A stretch of DNA of 64,000 bases from Octopus bimaculoides (GCF_001194135.2 NC_068996.1:53189297-53253296), one strand, 5' to 3'; shown: positions 2,487-60,654, counted from the stretch's first letter. Numbers and translations: made by a program. Notes: a model not told the origin generated them from the sequence alone.

Positions 2487-3465
2487 GATTATCTAAATCC
2501 TTTTTAAGTCAAGTTTTGTAGTATCATGGTCCATTTGAGTAGGGAGTTCTTGTTGAGTGAGTTGTATCCAGGTGTAGGTGGCTTATCTGGTATTCCTTGA
2601 AGAAATTTGTCCAGATTCCGTTTAAAGGAAATGGGATCCTTTTCCTTTTTGATCTGTTTCGGGAAAATGTTAAATAGGGCAGGGTCTGTTGAAGAAAATA
2701 AATTGTGCTGCTGTGTATTTATGTGTTGTGATCCTGAATTGGGTAGGGGACATATGGCCCATGGTCCTAGCCATGGGTGAATTTTGAAGCTAATGTTGAG
2801 GTCATTCAGACAATGCTGGTGGTATGTATTCCTCATCGTGCAAATGATGTATCGCTCACGGCAGCGCTGGAGTGAATAGAGTTTCAATGCTTTAAAGCAG
2901 TCCCAATAATCTACATCAGCCATGACCTTAATTTTTTTAGTGAATGCCCTCTGGGGTGATTCAATCTTTGAAATGCTTTGTTTTGTATGGGGAGACCACA
3001 AGGGGCAGCAGTATTTGAGGTGTGGCCGTACAAAGGAGGAGAAAAGTGGAATGATGACACCTTGTTCTCTGGACCGGAAGGATCTTAGGATCCAGGAGCT
3101 CATCTTATGAACTATATTGGCCTTATTGTTGATGTGGGCACTCCGGCTGAGACTGTTGTCAACAGTTACTCCTAGGTCTCTGATATAATTAGATACTTTG
3201 AGCGGTTCCCCTGAAGGAAGAGAGTTTGGCTGTTTTAACATAGTCTTTCTTTCAAAATACATCAGCTCAAATTTTCCTTCATTTAGTTGCATTTGTTTTT
3301 GTCTGCTCATTGACTCACAGCATGTAGATCAGTCTGGAGTCGGCTTCGGTCTTCTTCATTGATAATTTTCTGGAGCTTAGTGTCATCAGTGAATATTTTC
3401 ACTTTGCTGTGTTTTATGATGCTGGAAAGGTCATTTATATGGATTATAAAGAGGAGCAGGCCCAA
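2487..3465 (-). mobile_element. CR1-like LINE, 3' fragment of ORF2
   Basis: PLLF-like VLGLLLFIIHINDL...KIFTDDTK (degenerate YADD), RDLGV, VRPHLKYCCPLWSP, IESPQRAFTK, LYSLQRCRERY. Confidence 0.88.
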
Positions 3466-3714
3466 AACATCATCATCATCATCATTTAACATCCATTGTC
3501 CATGCTGGCATGGGTTGGGCAGTGTGACCAGGGCTGGCAAGCTGGGGAGCTGCACCAGACTCCAGTCTACATTGGCATGGTTTCTATAGCTGGACGCCCT
3601 TCCTAATGCTAACCATTTTACAGAATGTGCTGAGTGCTTTTTATGTGCCACTGCACAGGCACTTATACATGGTGCTGCAGAGGCACTTTGACATGGTATC
3701 ATATACATACATAT

Positions 3715-5027
3715 ATCATCATCTTTTAACATCTTATTTCTTTATTGCCCACAAGGGGCTAAACATAGAGGGGACAAACAAGGACAGACAAAGGGATTAC
3801 GTTGATTACATTGACCCTGAGTGCATAACTGGTACTTAATTTATCGACCCCGAAAGGATGAAAGGTAAAGTCAACCTCGGCTGAATTTGAATTCAGAATG
3901 TAACAGCAGACGAAATACTGCTAAGCATTTCGCCCGGCATGCTAACGTTTCTGCCAGCTCACCGCCTTTTAACATTTGTCGTCCATGCTGGCATGGGTTG
4001 GATAGTTTGACCAGAGCTGGTAAGCTAAGGGGCACTAGACTCCAGTCTGATTTGACATGGTTTCTACAGTTGGATGCTGCCCTCCCTAATGCCAACCACT
4101 TTACAGAGTGTAGTGGGTGCTTTTATGCACCACCGGTATGGGTGCCAGTTGCATGACACCAGTATCTGCCACAACTATGATTTCACTTAGCTTGATAGGT
4201 CTTCTTCTCAAGCACTGTATATTGCCTAAGGTTTCGGTCATTTGTCATTGCCACCATGAGGCCCAATGCATGAAAGGTACTCTTTATGTGTCACCAGTTC
4301 AGATGCCTGTTAAATGACACTGGCATCAGCCACATTGCCTCTGTGAGGCCCAACACTCAACAGGTGCGTTGTACATGCCACCGGCATGGGTGCCAGTTAC
4401 ACAACACTGGCATCAGTCACATTGCCTCCATGAGGCCCAACGCATGAAAGGTGTTTTTTTTATGTGCCACTTACATGACTCTGACATCAGCCACGACTAT
4501 GATTTCACTTGGCTTGATGGGTCTTCTCAAGCACAGCATATCACCAAAAGTCTTGGTCACTAGTCATTGCCTCCGTGAGGCTCAACATTCGAAGATCATG
4601 CTTCACCGCCTCATCCCATGTCTTCCTGGGTCTGCCTCTTTCACAGGTTCCCTCCATGGTTACAGATCAGCAATCCCTTCCACAGCTGTCCTCATCCATA
4701 CATAACACATGACCATACCAGCGCAGTCATTTCTCTTGCACACCACATCTGATGCCTCTTATGCCTAACTTTTCTCTCAAGATGCTTACACTCTGTTGAA
4801 CGTGCACACTGACATTACACATCCAGCAAAGCATACTAGCTTCATTTCTCTCATGCCTATGCATGTCCTCAGCTGTCACAGCCCATGTTTCACTGCTGTG
4901 TAGCTGTCTTCACACAGGCATCACACAATCTGCCTTTCACTGTCAGGGAGAGGTCTTTGTTACCAAGAGGTAGGAGCTCTCTAAACTTTGCCCAGCCTAT
5001 TCCTATTCTTGCAGCTGTGCTCTCACA
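3715..5027 (-). mobile_element. 5'-truncated RTE-clade LINE (ORF2 C-terminus, repetitive 3' UTR, (GAT)n tail)
   Basis: Homologous to 31440-32055 (FRELL, HSSET-like, RPRKTWDE motifs); the tail is interrupted by a SINE. Confidence 0.85.
3733..3968 (-). mobile_element. tRNA-derived SINE, family 2 (Nin-domain-like centre), inserted in an RTE tail
   Basis: Contains CTTTCATCCTTTCGGGGTCGATAAATTAAGTACCAG; flanked by direct repeat CTTTTAACAT (3723-3732 and 3966-3975). Other copies near 11977-12195, 13097-13310, 17958-18120, 55400-55575, 59130-59320 and 63597-63810. Confidence 0.85.
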
Positions 5028-13474: not shown

Positions 13475-13651
13475 GCTCCTGTGATAATAATTCCAACAAA
13501 GTATTACACAGTTCCGACTCAACATTTCCGAGACTTAGGATGTTCTATGGTAATCTGGGCTAATCACAACTTGCGCGCCTCAATCACAGCTATGCAAAGT
13601 TTATCTGCGACAATCTACAAGGATCAGTCTCTTGTAAATGTTGAAAAAACG
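13475..13651 (+). CDS. pepM: PEP mutase, penultimate coding exon
   Basis: TAG|GCT acceptor, ACG|GTAAG donor, 177 nt in frame. Encodes [59 protein letters not shown] with the PTKY and VIWANH motifs of PEP mutases. Confidence 0.95.
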
Positions 13652-15358: not shown

Positions 15359-15471
15359 AATGATGTCAATATTATGAAAATAAAACACGAAATAGCAATC
15401 AAATCATATTAAATTTTCAATCTTTAATTTTAATTATTGTTAAATTTTATCTTTATCAATATAATTTGCAG

Positions 15472-15976: not shown

Positions 15977-16879
15977 TACAAGGTAGTATCAACAAGTTCC
16001 TGGATTAGTTATGTTTAATAAAAACAATAACTTATTTACCTAAATTTTAACATCATCTCCTTTGAAATAGTCACTTTGAACAGCAATACACCAGTTCCAG
16101 TGTTCCTGCCACTTTTGGGATCCAGCCTGGAAGTCCGTTTCCATAAGCACGTTGAGGACCTTCTGCGATTCAATCTGGATCTCGACAACAGTGATCATTA
16201 AGCTGCATTTTCATCTTGGGGAAGAGATGGAAGTCCACAGGTGCTAAATCTGGCGAATAGGGCGGATGCAGAAGTGATACTGTATGGTTTCTAGTGAGAA
16301 ACTCAAGAATGACAAGAGCTCAGTGACAAGGTACATAGTCATCATGAAGAATGCAATTCTTCACGCTCCACAGACCTGGTTGCTTTTGCTGAATATTCTC
16401 TTGCAAATGGTTCAAAACATTGTTGATTGTCCTCTGATGATCGTCATGCATAAGCTGATGAATTTTCTCCACATTTCTGGGGGTGACACTCATGGCAGAT
16501 CTTCCAGATCACTCGTCGTCTTCCAGGGACATTCTTCCACTTTTGTAGCACCTGTGCCACTTGAAACATTGCATATGACCCATTGTCTCATCGCGGTAAA
16601 CTTGCCAAACCATGCTCAATGTCTCTGTATCAGACTCCCTAATTTTAACACAAAATTTCACGTTGGCTCTTTGTTCCAACTTTCTGTCCATGACAAAATC
16701 ACATACACACATTGTCACAAAAACACAAATTTCACAACTTGTCAAGTAAACACAGTGATGTTACTTGGCACACTGTCTCATGAAGGTCACTGCTAGCTTT
16801 CACTGCACACACAACCACATGCTGCCATCTGTTGGCATGCTACAGAGCTAGTCCAGGAACTTTTTGATACCACCTCATA
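15977..16879 (-). mobile_element. Mariner-type DNA transposon, internally deleted
   Basis: ~30-bp TIRs (AAGGTAGTATCAACAAGTTCCTGGATTAG / CTAGTCCAGGAACTTTTTGATACCACCTCA), TA at both ends; MDRKLEQRANVKFCVK...SLEDDE HTH remnant. Confidence 0.9.
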
Positions 16880-27293: not shown

Positions 27294-28202
27294 TGTGTGT
27301 TTTTAAATGGCTTATAAACACTTTTCACACTGCAATTGTTTTTGTTTCAGCACACATTCTCACATCAGGTCACTTGCTATGCAAGTACATCTCTGTTATA
27401 TAGAATGCTATTCAGAACCAATACTGTTTCCATCACTAATAACGAACTAAGGATATGTAGTGGATCTTGCATGCATGAAGTGGATTTGATCCACCATAGC
27501 CAAATTTAAATTAACACTGCAACAGAACTTTTCCCATGGTGGAACAATAATTTTTCTCTGACAGCAGTTTTACATTTTCCAGATGCCTTTAGCTAGGCCG
27601 AAATGATGTCTTCACCACTTGACCCTTTCTAACCTCTTCTACTTCACCAAAAGCTAGAACAGAGATAACAAGACCACCAACTAAATCTATTGTTCTCAAT
27701 GATATGTCTATCCTTCTGAATAGTTATAAAAGCAAGAACACCCCAAGCAAAAATCAGTTGGTGATGACTCAGTGAGAACGAAGTCTGGCTGACCAACTAG
27801 AACCTTGGCCAGAGGGAGAAATGAAATTTACTGTCAGCAACTGTGTAACAACGTCCCACAACCCTACAACTTTCACTAGTTCTAATTCTATTCTCTTACA
27901 ACATCATTCTATCGTTACCTGTGGATTACTACTAACAATTCGTATATGCCAAACTATGCAAAGAAACATTCTACCACATCATTCTTTTGCATGCTCTCGG
28001 ATGTTATAACCTGCCTGTTGAGGTATGGTATTTTTCAACGTAATGGTAAATATTGTAGTGGTATTGGTGGTGGTGGTGGTGGTGGTAGTAGCAGCAGCAG
28101 CAGTAGTAGTAGTAGCACTGAGCAATGATGAGGAATAAATGAACTTTAGGCTTTGGGTTACTTTAAATATATCACAAACATATATCAACCAACCTAAAGT
28201 CC

Positions 28203-28228
<26 letters not shown>

Positions 28229-28233
<5 letters not shown>

Positions 28234-29490
28234 CCCTTCAGGTAGATGGCCCTGCTCAGTATGTAGAAAAGGAGTAGGTAGTAACTCTATAAGATGTACC
28301 CGGTGCAAGCTATGGACACATAAGAGGTGCAGCAACATCAAAGGCAGGTTAACTAGCAAGTTAGTTTTTGTTTGTGGCAGATGTTCAGGTGCAATAAAGA
28401 CTGCAAACAAACNNNNNNNNNNNNNNNNNNNNNNNNNNNNNNNNNNNNNNNNNNNNNNNNNNNNNNNNNNNNNNNNNNNNNNNNNNNNNNNNNNNNNNNN
28501 NNNNNNNNNNNNNNNNNNNNNNNNNNNNNNNNNNNNNNNNNNNNNNNNNNNNNNNNNNNNNNNNNNNNNNNNNNNNNNNNNNNNNNNNNNNNNNNNNNNN
28601 NNNNNNNNNNNNNNNNNNNNNNNNNNNNNNNNNNNNNNNNNNNNNNNNNNNNNNNNNNNNNNNNNNNNNNNNNNNNNNNNNNNNNNNNNNNNNNNNNNNN
28701 NNNNNNNNNNNNNNNNNNNNNNNNNNNNNNNNNNNNNNNNNNNNNNNNNNNNNNNNNNNNNNNNNNNNNNNNNNNNNNNNNNNNNNNNNNNNNNNNNNNN
28801 NNNNNNNNNNNNNNNNNNNNNNNNNNNNNNNNNNNNNNNNNNNNNNNNNNNNNNNNNNNNNNNNNNNNNNNNNNNNNNNNNNNNNNNNNNNNNNNNNNNN
28901 NNNNNNNNNNNNNNNNNNNNNNNNNNNNNNNNNNNNNNNNNNNNNNNNNNNNNNNNNNNNNNNNNNNNNNNNNNNNNNNNNNNNNNNNNNNNNNNNNNNN
29001 NNNNNNNNNNNNNNNNNNNNNNNNNNNNNNNNNNNNNNNNNNNNNNNNNNNNNNNNNNNNNNNNNNNNNNNNNNNNNNNNNNNNNNNNNNNNNNNNNNNN
29101 NNNNNNNNNNNNNNNNNNNNNNNNNNNNNNNNNNNNNNNNNNNNNNNNNNNNNNNNNNNNNNNNNNNNNNNNNNNNNNNNNNNNNNNNNNNNNNNNNNNN
29201 NNNNNNNNNNNNNNNNNNNNNNNNNNNNNNNNNNNNNNNNNNNNNNNNNNNNNNNNNNNNNNNNNNNNNNNNNNNNNNNNNNNNNNNTTTCGTGCGGGTG
29301 ACACGTAAAAGCACCCACTACACTCTCTGAGTGGTTGGCGTTAGGAAGGGCATCCAGCTGTAGAAACTCTGCCAAATCAGACTGGAGCCTGGTGTTGCCA
29401 TCCGGTTTTCACCAGTCCTCAGTCAAATCGTCCAACCCATGCTAGCATGGAAAGCGGACGTTAAACGATGATGATGATGATGATGATGAT
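28229..29490 (+). mobile_element. 5'-truncated RTE LINE, young copy, middle in gap
   Basis: Intact WPCSVC...FVCGRC segment before the gap; CpG-rich tail ending GGACGTTAAACGATGATGAT after it. Confidence 0.8.
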
Positions 29491-31151: not shown

Positions 31152-32765
31152 TCATCATCATCATCATCATCATCATCATTGATTAACATTTGTTTTCCAT
31201 GCTGGCATGGACTGGACAGTTTGACTGAGGTCTGAAGAGCCAGTGGCCGCACCAGGCTCCAATCTGGTCTAGCAGAGTTTCTACAGCTGGATGCTCTTCC
31301 TAACACCAACCACTCTGAGAGTGTAGTGGGTGCTTTTTACGTGCCACCAGCACAGGAGCCAGTCAGGCAGGCCTGGCATTGACCATGTACGGGTGGTGCT
31401 TTTTACGTGCCATCGGTATGGGAGCCAGTCAGGAGCCACCAGTTCCAGCTACGATATTGGTTTCACTTGACTCAGCAGGTCTTCTCAAGTATATCATATT
31501 GCCTGATGCATCAGGAGTATTCTTAACAGGGCTGGACATGCATGGCTGTGATCTCACTTTAGTTACAAAGGTCCCGGTCTCCTGTCATTGCCTCTGTGAG
31601 GCCCAGTGTTTGAAGGTCATGCTTCACCACCAAATCCCATGTTTTCCTGGGTCTACCTCTTCCACAGGTTCTTTATACAGTTAGGAAGAGGTACTTCCTC
31701 ACACAGCTGTTTTCATTCATACGCAATACATGACCATACCAGGGCAGTCGCCTCTCTTGCACAACACATTTGATGCTTCTTATGTCCAACTTTTCTCTCA
31801 GGGTGCTTACACTCTGTCCTGTGTGCACACTGACATTACACATCCAGTGGATCATACCAGCTTCATTTCTTTTGAGCCTACGTATGTCCTCTGCAGTCAT
31901 GACCCATGTTTCACTGCCATGTAGCTTGGCAGTTCGCACACATGCATCATACAGTCTAGTTTTCACCCTGAGTGAGAGGCCCTTAGTTGCCAGCAGAAGT
32001 AGGAGCTCCCTAAACTTTGCCCAGGCTCTTCTTACTCTAGTCGCTACACTCTCAGAGCAACCAACCTCACAACTGACTTGGTCACCTAGGTAGCAGAAGC
32101 TATTAACTACTTCTAGTTTCTCCCCCTGGCATGTGATGGAATCAGTTTTCTGTACATCTTCAGTGTTTATTGCCCCAGTGCATCTGCCACACACAAAAAC
32201 TATTTTCTCAGTCAACCTTCCTTTGATATTGCTGCACCTTTTATGTGTCCATAGCTTACCCCAGGTACATCGTATGGAATTTCTACTATGCCTTTTCTTC
32301 AGATTGAGCAGGGCCATCTACCTGAAGGTGGTTGTGATTTGACAGCCTTCCTACTTACTAAGACTTTGGTTTTGACCAGGTTAACCCTAAGGCCCTTCGA
32401 TTCTAGACCTTGCTTCCACACCCTAAACTTTGTCTCCGATTCTGGCAGTGACTCGGCTATTAGAGCAAGGTCATCAGCATAGAGGAGCTCCCAGGGGCAG
32501 CCTGTCTTGAATTCCTGTTATTGCCTGGAGGACTACAATGAATAAGAGGGGGCTGAAGACTGATCCCTGATGAACCCCTACTTCTACTTGGAATTCTTCA
32601 CTATACTCATTGTCAACCCTCACCTTACTGACAGCATCCCTGTACAAGGTTTGTGCAGCTCTTACAAGCCACTTGTCTATTCCCAGTTTCCACATTGACC
32701 ACCAGATAAAGGATCAGGTGACCCTGTCAAAGGCTTTCTCCAAGTCAACAAAAGCCAAGTACAAA
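31152..32765 (-). mobile_element. RTE-clade LINE, 5'-truncated, RT domain to tail, decayed
   Basis: FVDLEKAFDRV, GVHQGSVFSPLLF, ELLYADDL (YADD 32470-32481), GLRVN, FCYLGD, HGSETW, LPWYGHV; stops and frameshifts. Confidence 0.92.
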
Positions 32766-35464: not shown

Positions 35465-35557
35465 ATGGCCGCTCACACAGCAACAAAGACTTTCGGTGAG
35501 AAACCCAAATCATTCCAACTTGACGATGGAGGAGAATATTATTATATTGGCTCAGAG
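35465..35557 (+). CDS. SMARCB1: SMARCB1/SNF5/INI1 exon 1 (start codon)
   Basis: ATG at 35465 with in-frame TAA upstream at 35447; MAAHTATKTFGEKPKSFQLDDGGEYYYIGSE; GAG|GTAAG donor; 93 nt as in human exon 1 CDS. Confidence 0.93.
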
Positions 35558-37319
35558 GTAAGTATATTATAGATATATATATATTTTTTTTTTTCATGAA
35601 GATACCAAAATAAAAAGAATTAGTTTGTTAATCGTTACCGTGGAATCAAACAAGAACCTAGTTAACCGGCCGGTTATTCATCTCGCTACCAATATAATAT
35701 AATCTAATGTATATATATAATATATATTATATGTATGTATGTGTGTATTCAAAAGCAAATTATATTAATAAATTTTTGTTGAAAGATACAAATAAAAGAA
35801 AAGGAAAACAGCAACAGAAACAAAGAAAAGAGCAACTTTAATCCCATATTTATTGGAAATGTATATATTTTTGTTATATCTTATTTTGTAATTAAAGTTA
35901 ATTAAAGGCTGTTGCAGAAATACGGAAATAACTTGGTTAACCCGAAGCGCTGCTACCCTTTTTTTTTACAGAGGCACATGGTTGTTATTAACTTGATACA
36001 TTCTTTATTCAGAAATATGGCTGAGACTAAATTTATATTTCTTTTTTGTATCAACAAAGATATCTACGTGGTCGCTCGGCCTGTTTATTTAATCTCACCC
36101 AAAGCTCCTTTTTATTCACATAGTCCTAAAAAGATGAGTGAAGTCATAGCCGAAATATTTTTGGCCATAGTTCTCGATCCGAGTTGTCCTGGTGCTAAAT
36201 AATAAACTGCTGAGAAAAACAATTATGATAAAAATATAACAATTAGAAAATATGGCTGTTCAGTTTTTCAAAGAAATATTGGTGTGATGGTCGTAATTTG
36301 CTCAAGTTTCATTTATCAGCAGGAAACAATTTTTCCACTCTATTATTCTTCTCTCTAATTACACGGAACAAAACAACTTTTCAAAAGATTGCCAAGCGAT
36401 TCTTCAGCACCAAAAACGATTTCTTTCTTTCTGAATTTCAGAGGTGGCTGCTACTGTAGTTGCACATTTAAAGCAGACACTCGTACGTTTATTTACACAT
36501 ACATATATATACACAAACTAAGTGTAGATCTTGTTTATGTATGTTGTTTGTATAATTATGCTGTCCAGGATGCGGCATTGGCGTGTCCTCTTTCATTTAC
36601 CTTTCATTTTTATGTTTACACTGATAATCAGATGAAGAAGGCATACCACGCACGCACGCACACTCACACACACAAATCTTTCTGTCTCTATACGTGTGTT
36701 TATGAATATACAAAAATTATTTCTTGCATAAATTTTGGAAAAGGGAACAGTCGAAGATAATGACCCCTGTGCTTGACCAGCACTATAGCTTATCGACTCC
36801 GGAAGGATCAAAGATAAGTTTACCACGGTGAAATTTGAGCCTTAAGAACCAGAACAAATACGCTCTAACTAGCCAACCAATTTACCGCTTGTAGTAGTAG
36901 TCGTAGCAGCAGCTGCAACATCAATAATAATAATAATAGTATTAATAATAATAATAATAATTGGAAAATGAAATTGATATTTCGAAGATTTTTTTTTTTT
37001 TTTAATAGAAACAATGTTAGTGTTTTATTTATGAATTTTTAATACTGTTTAGCTTGATTTTTCCTAGTCTGTTTAGTTGTATAAGATTCAGTTGCCTGAA
37101 TATTTCTTTTATTTAGGGGGTGGAAAAAAAAAGGTTCAAAAAGTTAGATGTTGGAGCCAAAACATTTTAATTAAAATTCAGAGTCGTCTCCCCTGTTTTG
37201 CTGACAAGTTAATTATTTAACATGGTTTTTGTATCCTCGCTATGTACGTAATTTTAACCAATTAAGATATTTGGATTCATTACATTAAGTATGCTAGAAT
37301 CTCACTTAATTATTTGTTT

Positions 37320-37680
37320 TTATGCAGAAGGCGTACGTGTGCAATTTTCCTCCTGTTATTCTCAAGACAAGGACAATTCAAAAAAGGACAGATGGGCTTG
37401 ACTATATAGCATTTGTGCTATCTAGGTACCTAACTGAACTCATATCATTTACAATCTACTTGCCCCTGTTCGTGTCGCTCCTACTTGAAAATTTCCAACT
37501 CACTTGTCTCCATTTATTGCGTCCAACCTCCCAGAATTCATATTAATAACTATGCCCTACCCTCTTTTCACAGAACAGTTGCCCTCTGGAATTTTGTCCC
37601 TGCTCATGTTTTCCCAAAGGTGATAACTTATAAAGATTCAAGGAAATCAATTTCATTGGTCTATGAAGATCCTGAATAAT
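37320..37680 (+). mobile_element. CR1/L2-like LINE 3' remnant
   Basis: SFHRTVALWNFVP motif typical of LINE ORF2 C-termini; heavily decayed. Confidence 0.45.
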
Positions 37681-38957
37681 CCTGTACTATCCTCTAGTCC
37701 CAGCAAGTTAAAAAGGGAAAACCCATAGGGTATTGTTAACTTGATATAAAATACTATTAGGGAGTAAGATAAAAGAAGTTTATCAGCTATACATACAAAG
37801 ACATATGGAGCATTGGTGGGAATCTGTATTTTTAGTTCATTTACTTAAAATCTGCATATTTCCACATTTGTATATACAGCAGGCAAACCTCCTTCATCAG
37901 GATCCTTTATGATAAAATATGCCAAGTTTACAGTGTTTTGTAGTTCTTTACTTAGAATATATTGTCTTACTTGACAATGTTTTTTAAACTGAAAATAACC
38001 AGTTTCCTTTTAGAACTGGTGCTTAATAAACTTGTATGAATAATTAGCATTTTTATGACACACGTGCATGTGTGTGTGTATGAATTTTAAAAAAATTATA
38101 GGCACATGCATTGTAAATGACTGGCACTTCTATTCTTGGTGTGGTTAGAAGTTTGCTTTCCAACCACATGGTTCCAGGTTCAATCTGACTATGTGGCACT
38201 TTGAGTAAATGTCTTCTTTTATAGCCTCAGGCTAATCAAAGCTTTGTGAGTGTATCTGATCGATCGGAAACTTTGTGTGTGTGTGTGTCTTTCTCTCCTT
38301 GTCTTGATATTGCATAATAGTCATAAATAAATATCATAGTCATGCGTTGTCGATCAGTCTGCAAGAACTTTTGACCGTGGGAAAATAATACTTAGCTTGG
38401 AAACAGGTGAGGATTGGTGTCATTGAGGGCATCCAACTATAGAAAATCTGCCTCAAAGAAACTCTGTCCAGCCTATGCAAGCATAGAAAATGGATGTTAA
38501 ATGATGTTGATGATTATCCAAACTTAAATCTGTTCCAAATTTCTTAGAAATATTTGACATGTTTTATTCCTAATCTTGATTTGTAAGTCCTTCAGTCCCT
38601 GGAGAGAATTCCCATTATGAATACAACTAGCCACTTTCTCAATCATCATATTAATTATAAGCCTCTACACGGTTACTCGATTTATACTTCTTCATGGCCC
38701 TAATATATGGAGCAATCACATCTGGAATGACATTAATTATAGATCTACCCAAACAAGGGCTAAATCAACTAAATTAGAAATAGAAGAATGTCTCTGTTTC
38801 ATTATTCTTATTTGAAAGCATTTCATTTGTGTATCTCTTCATATAAACTTATGTACTAAGCTATCTGAGCTTCCATCATCATCATCACCATGTTTAATTT
38901 AACTTAAAGTTGACCATGGGGAAATATTAGGCATAATTTGCATCAGTATGCAGTGAA

Positions 38958-39289
38958 GGCGCATGGCTCAGTGGTTAGAGCTTTGGACTCACAATCATGA
39001 GGTTGTGAGTTCGAATCTCAGACCGGGTTACATGTTGTGTTCTTGAGCAAGGCACTTTATTTCACATTGCGCCAGTTCACTCAGCTGTAAAAATAAAGTT
39101 GTGATGTCACAGGTACCAAGCTCTATCAGCCTTTGCCTTTCCCTTGGATGACGTTGGTGGTGTGGAGAGGGGAGACCGGTATGCATGGGCGACTGCTGTT
39201 CTTCCATAAACAACCTTGCCCAGACTTGTGCTTGGGAGGGTAACATTCTAGGTGCAATCCCAGGGTCAGTCATGACCGAAGGGGGTCTC
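38958..39289 (+). mobile_element. tRNA-derived SINE, family 1
   Basis: Full-length match to 1371-1706. Confidence 0.85.
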
Positions 39290-39748
39290 AGCATGCAGTG
39301 TTGCATCATTTAAATAAGAAACATAATGTTAGTTCATTTTACCTAATTTCTTCAGTTTTGTAGCTTATGACACTTAAATATAGATTAAGATGGTTCAGGA
39401 ATGAAATTAAGCCAGTGCTTCATATTACAAGTAATCTTGGTTAGCTGTTGATAATAATGGTAGTGGGGACTAGATAATTGAAAGATCTATTCTTTAAAGG
39501 ATGGCACTGATATTCATAAAATGACGTGATTTATTTTTATGTGTTAAAATGTATATTTTATTTAGTATATCCAAGTAAGACAATACTGTATTGTTGCTGG
39601 CTTTATTTATTTTAGGCCTATGAAGCTACATTATTATGGAACAATCTTAATCTCAGTCCAAAATTAAAATTTTTAATGAGTAATTTGAAGAATATTCAAA
39701 ACCACAGTTGGAAACTGTTTGACAGCCCAGAATGAAACAACAGGGTAA

Positions 39749-40052
39749 AGACCCCCTTTGGTCGTGACTGACCATGGGATTGCACCTAGAGAGTTCCCCT
39801 TTGAGGCACAAATCTGCACAAGGTTTTTTATGGAAGATCAGCAGTCACCCATGCATGCCACTGATATTATCCAAGGGAAAGACAAAGCTTGGCACCAGTG
39901 ATGTTGCAACTCATTTCTACGGTTGAGTGAACTGGAGCAACGTAAAATAAAATGTCTTGCTCAAGAACATAACACACAACCCAGTCCAGATTTCAAACTC
40001 AATACCTCATGATTGTGAGCCCTACACTCTAACCATTGAGCCATGCACTTTC
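39749..40052 (-). mobile_element. tRNA-derived SINE, family 1 (internally deleted)
   Basis: Reverse-complement match to 38958-39289. Confidence 0.75.
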
Positions 40053-41311
40053 ATTGCTCTTTACCAAACAACAAGACTACATTAGAAAATTACTATTTGT
40101 AAATCTCATAACAAAAGATAATCAGCAACAGTACTTTGGAGCAAAGTGGAAATTGGCAAAACAAATGCAATTGATATTATATTATGAAATGCGACAAGCA
40201 CTATTTAACCACTAAACACAAAGATTAGACTATAATAATAATTTGAAATTTTGAAAAGTAAATGTTTGGTTTAAAATTCATTCTCTATTTCTTACGTAGT
40301 TTATTTTTCAATTATATTTCAAAAACAGTTTCTAAATTAACTGTTTTAAATTTCATCCGATGGAATTTTATTTGGTTTTTGGTTGTGTCATTAAGATGGT
40401 TATGGCTGGATATCTATGAAAGTTGTATATACCAGTATCTAGTAGGAGTTATCCGACAGTAGATTCAGACAAAGAACTGCAAAAGATTGTTTTAGTCAAC
40501 AGACTCCATTGTGAACATGATCAGGGTTAAAGTACTAAGAAATTGCCAGTCCTGCAGCCCAACCCTATCCTCCTTGCCCTGCCAGCTTTATCATTGCTAT
40601 TCTGTTGCCCCCTCTCCGTTATAGACCCAGGTTTCACCAGTTACTGCATTCCTTCCTTCCTCCTTACTTGCATATCCTTGGTGATCCTCTTCCATCCCAT
40701 TTGTATTCTCATCCTCACGAGCATATGCCCTGGCACATTCACCACCATATCTCTTGCTATCTCTTCCTCCTTCTGTTATGCTCTTATCACCTGGCACGGA
40801 GCCACCTCCTTCAATACTACCACCCCTCTCAAAGGATCTTTATCTTGCAAGATTCTTGGTCACCTCACTGGTGCTGGTATTACATAGAAAGCATCCAGCC
40901 ATGAAAACCCTGCCAGAACAAACTGGAGCTTGGTGCAGTCCTCTGGCCTGTCAGCTCTTGTGAAATTGTCCAACCCATACTAGTATGGAAGAAGGACGTT
41001 AAATGATGATGAAAGTAAGCTTAAAAGTGAGGAAGTGATGATTAGTACAAAAAACTTAGTATGCATTACAATCATTAGAAGACTGATGATACTAACATTT
41101 TAGAGATGTTACATCAACTAGTAGCTACTAGTCAGTCTAATACACCTAAAATATTAGTGCACTATCAGATTGCTCAAGATATTAATGTATACTTAGTCAG
41201 CTCTTTATACTAATCATTTCCGGAAGTGGTAAATAGTCTGTTACCCATTTGATATAAATTAGAAATGATCTAATTATAAATCTCTCAGAGAAACTTAAGC
41301 AGTAGTGATGC

Positions 41312-41732
41312 GATAAAGTAGTTGTATGCTGCCAACTTAACGTGACAGTCCCAATAAGGGAATATACTACTGCTATTTAACTCTAGGAAGCTGGACCGCT
41401 TTCTGTCAGCCTTGACACATTTCCTGTGTCCTTATGTTTGTAATCAGTGAATGTGTTTCACTGAAATAGTATATGTTTGCGAGTGTTAAACAGACTTCTT
41501 CAACCAGCTGGTCATGCTACTTCAGGCTGATGACGAGCAAAGACTCAGAAACATGTCCCTGAATGCAGGCTAGGCTGGGTGGAGGAGTTTGTCTCCCCCT
41601 CGCAAACATAAGGACACAGTAATTGTGTCAAGGCCGACAGGAAGCGGTCCAGCTTCCTAGGTCTAACCAACAGTAGTATTATTCCCTTCAGGGGACTGTC
41701 ACATTAAGTTGACAGCATACAACTACTTTATC
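41312..41732. mobile_element. Foldback/MITE-like element with ~130-bp imperfect inverted arms enclosing a hammerhead
   Basis: 41312-41440 is the reverse complement of 41603-41732 with scattered mismatches (GATAAAGTAGTTGTATGCTG...CCTTATGTTTG). No TSD recognised. Confidence 0.75.
41521..41563 (+). ncRNA. Minimal type I hammerhead ribozyme motif
   Basis: TTCAGG-CTGATGA-CGAG caaaga CTCA-GAAAC-AT-GTC-CCTGAA. Perfect 6-bp stem I, intact core, palindromic ACATGT stem III, GUC triplet; stem II closes with a C-A mismatch. Confidence 0.72.
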
Positions 41733-42144
41733 TTTTATATATTTGTAAAGAAACTAATGCTGGAGCTTGAGCTGTTGATGACTGTCAAGTGATTAGTGTT
41801 TGAGAGACAGGATATTGAGAAAATTTAACCAACTGACATCTTTCTTTTCGAGTAGTGTGGTTCCTGACTAAAAGTGAAAGATGGTTAATGAATGCTGGCA
41901 TTCTGCAGTTATGGAATTTGAAGTAATTTTGTGTGTACCATAAATTGCTAGGATATTAACTGCAGTGGTGTGACTGCAGAGAAAATTAGCAATAGTTACA
42001 ATGTTTTTTCAGATTGTTGAACTACAGAAATAAAGTCACACAGGATCAAGAGGACAGCCAATATATTAAACTCCATGCTGGCAGAAACATTGGATATAAA
42101 AAAAAATTTAAAACATCATTTACTATTTTTTTTTTAAATTCTAG

Positions 42145-42250
42145 GTTGGGAACTATCTTCGACTGTTTCGAGGTTCACTTTACAAGAAATATCCTTCCAT
42201 GTGGCGCCGGCTGGTTACTGTGGAAGAAAGGAAAAAGATAGCAGCAATGG
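42145..42250 (+). CDS. SMARCB1: SMARCB1 exon 2
   Basis: TAG acceptor, G|GTAAT donor; [35 protein letters not shown] (winged-helix region). Confidence 0.96.
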
Positions 42251-59403: not shown

Positions 59404-60654
59404 TATTGGGTTGGCAACTAAGTTCCCCCCGTCTTTTTCAAATTTAAATTTTTAAAAAGGTTTAATAAAAAATAACAACTAATTAATCAATAATGTATTC
59501 ATCCTTGTTTACGAATTCCCAACGTTCAACAAGATTTTCAATACCCTGTTGATAGAAATCATTTGATTTTGAGTCGAAAAATTGATCCAACCAAGCTCTC
59601 AATTCTGCATCAGTATTGAACGAAACTCCGTGCATAGCATTTGGAAGAGATCGAAAGAGGTGGAAATCTGTTGGTGCCAAATCAGGAGAGTACGGTGGGT
59701 GTGGCAGCACTTCCCAGTCATGCGTTTAAATGGCTTCTTTGGTCATATTGGCAATATGAGGGAGGGTGTTGTCATGCAGAAGAACTCCATGCTGCCGATT
59801 AGGTCTTTTCTCTTGAATAGCCGTGTTGAATCATTCCATCTGTTGAACATAGAGTTCCGCGTTGACTGTTTGGCTCCGTTCAAGCAATTTGTAATGGATA
59901 ATCCCTTCCCAGTCCCACCATACACACAACATCATTTTACGCAGATAAAGATCTTGTTTCATGTGCGGTGTCGCTTGTTTACCAGAGCTAAGCCATTCCT
60001 TACGCTGCTTCATATTGATGTACAGGCACCATTTTTTGTTGCCAGTAATGATTTGGTAAAGAAATTGTTGTTTGTGTCCATGAGTTGAGCGGTGATGAGC
60101 AAGCAAACCAGAAGAGATTGTGGCTCGCTGATTTTTGTTGTTATTACTTAAAGCATGCGGAACCCATGCTCCATACTTCTGAACCTTTCCCATCAAGTGA
60201 AGATGCTTCTCTATAGCAGTGTGGGAGCATTCCACTTTCTCTGCCAGTTCCTTTGTCGTTTGACAAGAATTTTTGTGCAAAAATTGGTTTAATCACTCTC
60301 CATTGAACTCAACTGGACGGCCAGAACGAGGTGCGTCTTTGAGGTCAAAATTTCCATTTTTGAACTTGGCATACCAATCACGAGTGGTTCTTTCAGCTAT
60401 GGCACCCTCTCCATACACAGCACAAATGTCGTGAGCAGCTTTTGCGGCCTTAGAACCTTGATTAAAAGCAAAAAGAAAGAGGTGTCAAAAAATGCTCGCT
60501 TTTCTTAACTTGACATTCCATTTTAATGATTTGGACATACACAAAAATTAACTAGAAAAAAAATAAATTCCAAAATGATTCAAAAATAGAATTCTTGAAA
60601 AAAATACATTTCAAAATTTAAAAAAATGGCAGGAACTTAGTTGCCAACCTAATA
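59404..60654 (-). mobile_element. Full-length (~1.25 kb) mariner with pseudogenised transposase
   Basis: TIRs TTGGGTTGGCAACTAAGTTCC / GGAACTTAGTTGCCAACCTAA with TA TSD; WVPHAL, ITGNKKW (first catalytic D is N), HDN, YSPDLAPTDFHLF; frameshifts and stops. Confidence 0.93.

Follow-up and report, generated by a model that had tools for sequence, protein, structure and literature searches.

A probable retroelement-borne type I hammerhead ribozyme in the first intron of SMARCB1 of Octopus bimaculoides

Background

The first intron of SMARCB1 in Octopus bimaculoides contains a short motif with the appearance of a hammerhead ribozyme, which raises the questions whether the motif is genuine, how it came to lie within this intron, and whether it has any consequence for the gene. 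Type I hammerheads of the retrozyme and Penelope-derived kinds are present in many animals in thousands to over a hundred thousand copies per genome, and intronic monomers are common among them. Canonical type I hammerheads are also known from short non-autonomous repeats, such as Schistosoma Sm-alpha and newt satellite 2, which are high-copy SINE-like or satellite units, and the octopus motif is like these in being a canonical type I hammerhead on a short non-autonomous repeat. The motif was noticed in a 64-kb stretch of O. bimaculoides DNA (the window, within which all octopus positions are counted), and the original prediction described it as a minimal type I hammerhead whose residual activity would cut the nascent SMARCB1 pre-mRNA.

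Results

Position and predicted structure of the motif

Over 8 kb, the window is 100% identical to the O. bimaculoides assembly GCA_001194135.2, and the gene is the octopus orthologue rather than human SMARCB1. A tblastn search with SMARCB1 placed exon 1 at 35465-35557 and exon 2 at 42145-42250. Because both exons are on the + strand and flank the motif, it lies in the sense strand of intron 1, as had been predicted, and the 3' splice site of this intron is found 582 nt downstream. The motif itself covers 41521-41563 on the + strand, and the surrounding features are as follows.

35558-42144, + strand: intron 1 of SMARCB1, the host of the insertion, with GT...AG ends and phase 0 (tblastn and splice-site inspection)
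41513-41520, + strand: 5' strand of the outer part of helix I, CATGC, and loop 1, TAC, aligned with the consensus '...UUAC' located 5' of helix I in the Rfam family HH9
41521-41526, + strand: helix I, 5' strand TTCAGG, forming six Watson-Crick pairs with 41558-41563
41527-41533, + strand: catalytic core C3-A9, CTGATGA (from the sequence and the HH9 alignment)
41534-41537, + strand: helix II, 5' strand CGAG
41538-41543, + strand: loop 2, CAAAGA, whose HH9 counterpart is CAAAAA
41544-41547, + strand: helix II, 3' strand CTCA
41548-41550, + strand: core nucleotides G12 A13 A14, GAA
41551-41556, + strand: helix III, palindromic ACATGT
41557, + strand: C17, with predicted cleavage at 41557/41558
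41558-41569, + strand: helix I, 3' strand CCTGAA, followed by U41564 and the outer strand GCAGG

The earlier base-by-base description (stem I, core, stem II, GAAA, ACATGT and GUC) agrees with the sequence at every position. The conserved type I core is complete and comprises C3 U4 G5 A6 N7 G8 A9, G12 A13 A14, the pair A15.1-U16.1 (A41551 and T41556), and C41557 as H17. Three helices can be arranged round this core: helix I, with 6 bp, has an extension, helix II consists of three Watson-Crick pairs and a C41534·A41547 (C10.1·A11.1) mismatch at its base, and helix III is reduced in cis to one A-U pair, A15.1-U16.1, that closes a palindromic CAUG tetraloop, the intermolecular alternative being a helix of 6 bp. 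The canonical G10.1-C11.1 closing pair is absent, and cmscan marks the closing pair as non-canonical. Beyond loop 1, an outer helix between 41513-41517 and 41565-41569 pairs at four of its five positions. Judged by these elements, the sequence is genuinely that of a type I hammerhead ribozyme, and cleavage is predicted 3' of 41557, after the GUC triplet. In the canonical metazoan type I plan, a tertiary contact is made by loops 1 and 2. Loops 1 (UAC) and 2 (CAAAGA) of the octopus motif seem to follow this plan and may form the contact. The designation as a minimal hammerhead is appropriate for helix III only, whereas loop 1, the 6-bp helix I, the four positions of helix II, and the 6-nt loop 2 correspond to the canonical tertiary-contact plan as aligned to Rfam HH9.

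A lineage-specific insertion folding into a long hairpin

The motif is part of an insertion into SMARCB1 intron 1 that is specific to O. bimaculoides when compared with O. vulgaris and O. sinensis. At the orthologous positions, the introns of O. sinensis (L033, ~15422-15429) and O. vulgaris (L034, ~16044-16050) contain only about 6-8 nt instead of the insertion, and the intron flanks on both sides of it are 88-93% identical to those of the two species. The insertion comprises the following parts.

41256-41732, + strand: lineage-specific insertion of ~477 bp, delimited by the empty sites in two species, with boundaries uncertain by about 12 nt per side
41256-41311, + strand: unpaired left tail of 36-56 nt outside the inverted repeat, with no counterpart at the right end
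41312-41508, no strand assigned: left arm of the inverted repeat, from alignment against the reverse complement of the right arm, with repeat pairs 78-91% complementary
41574-41732, no strand assigned: right arm of the inverted repeat, from repeat pairing and alignment

No clean target-site duplication can be defined at the O. bimaculoides insertion, the junctions being decayed and ambiguous. The right end, AACTACTTTATC, is similar to AATTAC[A/T]TC, the sequence of the empty site, and 41256-41275 may represent a decayed copy of the target site, followed by a tail of ~36 nt. The one-sided tail separates the left arm from the junction, and there are no inverted repeats at the very termini of the element.

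The 421-nt hairpin folds with -250 kcal/mol (z = -24). An alignment of the left side with the reverse complement of the whole sequence downstream of the cleavage site shows that the palindrome extends as far as helix I. Helix I therefore continues into a duplex of ~200 bp, and the ribozyme caps its apex. Both arms end in the shared sequence ...CAACTACTTTATC, beyond which a tail is found on the left arm only. The left arm contains an extra segment of 39 nt (41433-41471 or, equivalently, 41441-41479) with the direct repeat TATGTTTG at its borders. Complementarity of the outer arms is 87-91%, the differences being of the transition and CpG type, and the divergence of 9-13% between the arms is similar to the divergence of the introns between species. 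On the + strand, the arm mismatches comprise 7 G·U, 7 A·C, and 15 others and have no overall bias towards G·U. The innermost stem (41484-41520) has lower complementarity and is rich in + strand G·U pairs. The GC content of the element is 42%.

Covariance models, descriptor matches, and chance expectation

Infernal had been proposed as a check of the motif, and the outcome was divided. No hammerhead was matched in the whole window at the Rfam gathering thresholds, nor in a 500-nt stretch at E <= 10, both searches returning only miRNA-like hairpin noise. However, a focused cmscan of 86 nt with laxer filters ranked Hammerhead_HH9 (RF02275) at the top of 4227 families with 23.3 bits and E = 3.6e-4, which is below the gathering score of 52 and would correspond to E ~0.3 if scaled to the whole window. 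The match is missing from the 500-nt search because of the filters. The motif and HH9 have in common the UAC directly 5' of a 6-bp helix I, the four-position helix II, the 6-nt loop 2, and the outer helix.

A type I descriptor demanded a helix I of at least 4 bp, the boxes CUGANGA and GAAA, H17, and a helix III that is palindromic; helix II had to have at least 3 bp, and a single unpaired base was tolerated on either side of it. As a null, 40 Mb of first-order Markov sequence with the composition of the window gave two matches at the loosest setting and none when the helix III palindrome had at least 4 nt. The expectation at the observed stringency, obtained by extrapolation, is ~6e-5 per 64-kb window and only a few per octopus genome. 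Cephalopod DNA amounting to 524 kb, counting both strands, contained two convincing matches to the descriptor. The 6 bp of helix I come partly free and are not independent evidence because they form the innermost part of the 421-nt inverted repeat.

A metagenome scan with the pattern GGCTGATGAN{10,18}GAAACATGTCC yielded 31 matches to the core, helix III, and the innermost pair of helix I, mostly in high-GC contigs. None of the 31 combined a helix I of at least 6 bp with a helix II of at least 3 bp, and we regard these matches, which do not have the helices, as chance occurrences.

Search for further copies and parental elements

In blastn searches of the window and of the loci of O. sinensis, O. 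vulgaris, another cephalopod, and Sepia (262 kb), the element matched only itself. The window contains neither a second hammerhead, also when one mismatch in the core was allowed in the descriptor, nor a tandem arrangement, a second hammerhead is likewise absent from the orthologous loci, and the element consists of a single unit with a single hammerhead. A 20-mer from the arms had one chance match in prokaryote genomes (an Akkermansia MAG) and none in viral contigs. A 52-aa open frame of the element had no match in a protein-index search, and the exact look-up of a 41-aa ORF was likewise negative. With an approximate Penelope consensus as query, which makes for a weak test, tblastn did not find a Penelope ORF (RT/GIY-YIG) in the window or in the O. 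sinensis and O. vulgaris loci. A LINE ORF from the window, used as protein query, gave 21 proteins and one usable locus.

A motif in Sepia (L038:39164) is surrounded by AT-rich sequence and adjoins a (TA)n stretch. Given this context, the lack of a TAC loop, and a position away from any hairpin apex, it is doubtful as a counterpart of the octopus hammerhead.

An element of the same architecture in a distant cephalopod

The descriptor also matched at L037:39440, in the SMARCB1 flank of a distant cephalopod (GCA_054771915.1), a locus of which only the exons and a few repeats can be aligned to the window. The motif there consists of TAC, a 7-bp helix I (TGTTGAC and GTCAGCA), the core CTGATGA, a 5-bp helix II (AAGGC and GCCTT) with the loop CAATTA, GAA, the palindrome ATGCAT, and A as H17, directly preceding GTCAGCA. 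Position 10.1/11.1 is A-U. Rfam gave no hammerhead match for this motif. It caps a long hairpin with imperfect pairing (-187 kcal/mol, z = -11) within an insertion of 483 bp (39166-39648), the exact boundaries of which are known from an intact copy of the repeat that it interrupts. The insertion is flanked by an 11-bp target-site duplication, ATTGTATTCAT, and carries 29 unpaired nucleotides as a tail on its left side only; inverted repeats are absent from its termini.

The octopus and L037 elements have no significant similarity outside the ribozyme. They have in common their architecture, namely size, layout, and ribozyme plan, and not their sequence. The pairing of helix II is kept between GAG/CUC in the octopus and GGC/GCC in L037, which is no independent proof of a conserved structure because the descriptor required pairing. 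The 11-mer CAGTAGTGATG, which is common to the octopus tail and the L037 flank, was considered as a part of the elements and rejected; in L037 it is located outside the target duplication within a GAT-rich unrelated repeat.

The second element also bears on the possibility that the octopus motif is a chance look-alike of a hammerhead in the loop of a foldback or MITE-type DNA transposon. The palindrome would supply helix I free of charge, helix II has only three Watson-Crick pairs, there is no Rfam match at the gathering threshold, and the loci compared offer no second copy for comparison. However, the loop would have to supply CTGATGA, GAAA, helix II, the palindromic helix III, and H17 in register, for which the 40-Mb null gave no instance, and by the same coincidence loop 1 (UAC) and loop 2 (CAAAGA) would be on the canonical plan as well. 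In addition, the unrelated L037 hairpin element has a ribozyme of matching plan at its apex. Neither element has inverted repeats at its termini, the tail being one-sided, and the 11-bp duplication of L037 is atypical for most MITEs. A look-alike arising by coincidence is therefore very improbable.

Discussion

Relation to known hammerhead elements

The original prediction had assigned the motif to the type I hammerheads of the retrozyme and Penelope-like kind, and the core, the helices, the plan aligned to HH9, and the palindromic helix III bear this out. The ribozyme closely resembles those of the non-LTR retrozymes (such as axolotl HHR_Amex1 and HHR_Amex2, coral, and mussel; Cervera & de la Peña 2020, PMC7229834). 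These also have a helix I of 6 bp with internal loop 1, a helix II of 4 bp with a 6-nt loop, and a helix III that consists of one pair and a palindromic tetraloop. They further provide a precedent for a mismatch at the base of helix II, as one axolotl family tolerates a natural U·U mismatch there (PMC7229834). Metazoan retrozymes are a few hundred base pairs long and low in GC, and their RNAs circularise and have a high degree of self-pairing (PMC7229834); dispersed monomers of them, many of which are intronic, are found as well. The octopus unit falls within the retrozyme class in size (~477 bp compared with ~170-970 bp), in its low GC content (42%), and in its strong self-pairing (z = -24). 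However, it is a single unit, whereas the defining active genomic form of the retrozymes is the tandem array. It also differs in its one-sided tail and in its arms, whose complementarity is almost perfect over ~200 bp and which place the ribozyme exactly at the hairpin tip. A target-site duplication of more than 4 bp, another trait of retrozymes, is clear in the L037 element (11 bp), and the octopus junctions are too decayed to define one.

The minimal hammerheads in the pLTRs of Penelope-like elements (Cervera & de la Peña 2014, PMC4209133) are like the octopus motif in their type I topology and palindromic helix III. Most of them are solitary copies from truncated elements with very low activity as monomers, to which the octopus copy can be likened. 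In their plan, helix I is short (4-5 bp) and helix II long (6-8 bp), a nucleotide is bulged after A9, and the G10.1-C11.1 pair is conserved (PMC4209133). In contrast, the octopus motif combines a helix I of 6 bp and a UAC loop 1 with a helix II of four positions and C·A at 10.1/11.1, and no RT/GIY-YIG ORF was matched nearby. The hallmarks of Penelope insertions are nevertheless present in the octopus element, namely inverted arms with identical outer ends and a tail (36-56 nt) on the left only. According to a preprint, retrozymes are derived from the pLTRs of Penelope-like elements and their monomers are dispersed, with ~43% of them intronic in Xenopus.

With Hammerhead_HH9 (RF02275), the best-scoring Rfam family, which is found in a RECK intron of amniotes, the octopus motif shares the intronic position, the sense orientation, and the layout of the loops and of helices I and II. 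HH9 differs in having a stable helix III hairpin of 3 bp and a G-C closing pair, both of which the octopus motif does not have. HH9 is conserved across amniotes, whereas the octopus copy is specific to one octopus lineage. A full-text literature search for octopus hammerhead ribozymes gave nothing relevant, and cephalopod examples may thus be undescribed.

Origin of the element

On the structural counts considered, the octopus locus fits a retrozyme or Penelope-derived setting. We consider it likely that the motif is a genuine metazoan type I hammerhead on a ~477-bp non-autonomous retroelement, either a non-LTR retrozyme or Penelope-derived, that was inserted after the split from O. vulgaris and O. 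sinensis. We infer Penelope-type retrotransposition, an origin of the hairpin at the RNA level, and low activity. The source would have been a highly self-paired, hammerhead-containing transcript, linear or circular, which a Penelope-type reverse transcriptase may have copied in trans, with start and end opposite the ribozyme. The product of such copying would be a one-unit 'monomer' insertion.

Two sub-models of this process are each favoured by some of the features. The apical position of the ribozyme in two unrelated elements and the G·U-rich inner stem favour the first, in which a rod-shaped hammerhead RNA was opened at the loop facing the ribozyme and copied as one unit. A Penelope-style head-to-head or snap-back duplication of cDNA is favoured by the near-perfect outer arms, their identical outer ends, and the one-sided tail. 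The arms are more complementary than those of a typical viroid-like rod. As they are near-perfect and their mismatches have no G·U bias, an inverted duplication at the DNA or cDNA level fits at least as well.

Taken on its own, such a duplication would mean that the hairpin arose during integration and was not inherent in the RNA. Two 5'-truncated cDNAs of one 3' end would have been placed back to back, one of them with an optional tail and the other long enough to include the pLTR hammerhead, or the second arm would have been generated by snap-back copying at helix I. Penelope-like insertions are typically 5'-truncated, often with an abutting, inverted, and likewise 5'-truncated copy, and have a tail of 30-40 bp at one end only. 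With the purified Penelope enzyme, nicking and extension occur on both target strands, and the tail is set by two internal start sites of reverse transcription. The common outer end of the octopus arms and the left-sided tail are in line with this. Arms that were identical at insertion would be expected to have become 87-91% complementary by transition and CpG-type changes, and their divergence is similar to that implied by the interspecies identity of the flanking intron. However, the inverted arm stops exactly at helix I in two unrelated elements, which is unexpected from random 5' truncation, although it is expected from snap-back priming. Furthermore, the ribozyme follows the canonical retrozyme plan and not that of the Penelope minimal hammerheads, the innermost stem with its + strand G·U pairs resembles a native RNA structure, and the tblastn search with the approximate consensus, itself a weak test, found no Penelope ORF. 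We therefore regard this integration scenario as possible but not as the probable one.

Activity of the octopus copy

If the element is a retroelement monomer, as we consider likely, it would be unable to excise itself, since helix III needs a second hammerhead to form the active dimer. Amphibian retrozyme hammerheads of type I in which helix III is a single pair under a palindromic tetraloop depend on dimer formation for efficient cleavage (PMC7229834), in agreement with the earlier proposition that the palindromic helix III implies dimer-dependent cleavage. Of intact comparable monomers only a few percent are cleaved per hour in vitro (PMC7229834), and monomers of the Penelope minimal hammerheads show no detectable cleavage (PMC4209133). 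Because the octopus copy has no dimer partner in the pre-mRNA or elsewhere in the 64-kb window and carries the C·A mismatch at the base of helix II, which should weaken the ribozyme further, its self-cleavage is probably negligible. The mismatch plausibly results from CpG decay (CUCG to CUCA), given that the ratio of observed to expected CpG is 0.32 and that CpG-type differences are found between the arms. The present copy would thus be a decaying relic, and at most a negligible fraction of the SMARCB1 pre-mRNA would be cleaved.

Consequences for SMARCB1

The proposed consequence for the SMARCB1 pre-mRNA is not supported. The insertion is absent in O. sinensis and O. vulgaris, the window has no second hammerhead, and introns that are cut by a slow hammerhead have been reported to splice normally. 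The SMARCB1 protein cluster has entries from O. bimaculoides, O. sinensis, and O. vulgaris. The protein P0121 (379 aa) is identical in O. bimaculoides and O. sinensis and is also listed under an O. vulgaris accession, the longest annotated isoform of which is P0125 with 410 aa. A host function of the insertion is very unlikely because O. sinensis, which does not have it, encodes the identical SMARCB1 protein.

One could imagine that the ribozyme was exapted and tunes the expression or splicing of SMARCB1, in the way of the amniote HH9 in RECK, or, in a variant, that the dsRNA hairpin serves as a substrate for editing or dicing. The sense orientation, the intronic position 582 nt from the 3' splice site, and the resemblance to HH9, a conserved intronic hammerhead, would be compatible with such a role. 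However, the orthologous sites are empty in both other species although P0121 is the same, the base of helix II is mismatched and there is no dimer partner, the arms decay at about the neutral rate of the intron, and cleavage of introns by slow hammerheads is reported not to block splicing. We give exaptation hardly any credence. We take the motif for an ordinary relic of a retroelement, with no regulatory role for SMARCB1.

Implications for cephalopod elements

For the biology of SMARCB1, one more solitary and probably crippled copy of a well-known and abundant hammerhead class alters nothing. The value of the locus is modest: it provides the first documented cephalopod hammerhead within the literature searched, on an insertion that is dated by empty sites in two sister species. 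The recurrence of a ribozyme at the tip of a hairpin is a hint that could inform how such elements are copied. Two sequence-unrelated elements in distant cephalopods have one design, and the hammerhead-capped hairpin might therefore be a systematic feature. It is a speculative and rather unlikely extension of these data that cephalopods have a distinct class of ~480-nt units in which a ~200-bp duplex is capped by a type I ribozyme and a short tail is present at one end only. These hairpins would be propagated as single units rather than as tandem arrays, either as rod-shaped circular RNAs, with copying from the loop that faces the ribozyme, or through cDNA that primes its own copying by snapping back at helix I. 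If this were true, long sense-strand dsRNA hairpins would be scattered through the introns of animals that edit their RNA heavily.

A second hammerhead-capped hairpin element

The SMARCB1 locus of a distant cephalopod (GCA_054771915.1; L037 in the following) contains a second hammerhead-capped hairpin element of 483 bp at L037:39166-39648. It is bounded by an 11 bp target duplication, ATTGTATTCAT, carries a tail of 29 nt at its left, and was inserted inside another repeat. Its ribozyme was located as follows.

L037:39433-39479, + strand, hammerhead

Helix I of this hammerhead comprises 7 bp and is directly preceded by TAC, while helix II has 5 bp and is closed by the loop CAATTA. The palindrome is ATGCAT, and H17 is an A. 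About 118 nt upstream of the hammerhead, the stretch L037:39318-39358 (GCCAATTAGCATT...) shows a weak similarity, in direct orientation, to the ribozyme's 3' half. Aligned locally, the two score 25, to be compared with a mean of 16.9 and a maximum of 29 for shuffled sequences. The stretch could be either a decayed tandem unit or a chance similarity.

The octopus and L037 loci also have the 11-mer CAGTAGTGATG in common (window 41300-41310 and L037:39136-39146), and 18 of 21 positions are identical if the flanks are included. It is present in one copy per locus, in both cases upstream of the hammerhead and on the same strand, and further copies were not found elsewhere in the loci compared. The L037 copy is located outside the target duplication, within an unrelated GAT-rich repeat.

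A hammerhead-like match is also present in the SMARCB1 locus of Sepia pharaonis (L038:39164-39210), which consists of CTGATGA, a helix II of 6 bp, ATAT, C, and a helix I of 5 bp. The match does not have the TAC loop and is not positioned at the apex of a hairpin. Its surroundings are very AT-rich and it adjoins a long (TA)n tract; (TA)n targets are said to be favoured by Penelope-type elements. The Sepia match is probably due to chance.

Other features of the octopus window

The following additional features were identified.

2504-3732, 28139-28400 and 31673-32317, LINE reverse-transcriptase fragments
13481-13650, + strand, open frame with a stretch that recalls the PEP mutase / isocitrate lyase superfamily
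59831-60280, - strand, open frame resembling, as judged by eye, the N-terminal part of mariner-type transposases
~13.9-14.9 kb, 24.7-25.1 kb and 28.4-29.3 kb, assembly gaps (2235 N in total)

Two of the LINE fragments include a PHD-like zinc-finger stretch. The fragments have a small set of 21 homologues, most of them octopus sequences, and the one labelled as a Herbaspirillum MAG protein probably represents host contamination of that assembly. The open frame at 13481-13650 may be an exon of an upstream gene. The assembly gaps have (TA)n and (CA)n-like microsatellites at their edges. SMARCB1 intron 1 contains another inverted repeat pair (38950-39288 and 39749-40057, ~340 bp each, 74% identity), which is also found in O. 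sinensis and O. vulgaris.

The octopus hairpin as an RNA duplex

The left arm of the hammerhead-capped octopus hairpin contains an extra segment of 39 nt (within 41433-41479), which has the direct repeat TATGTTTG at its bounds and appears to have arisen later, by slippage or insertion inside the arm. Through the insertion the intron has acquired, on the sense strand, an RNA duplex of ~200 bp with almost perfect pairing (41312-41732). Because RNA is heavily edited in cephalopods, this duplex could be a substrate of ADAR or Dicer.
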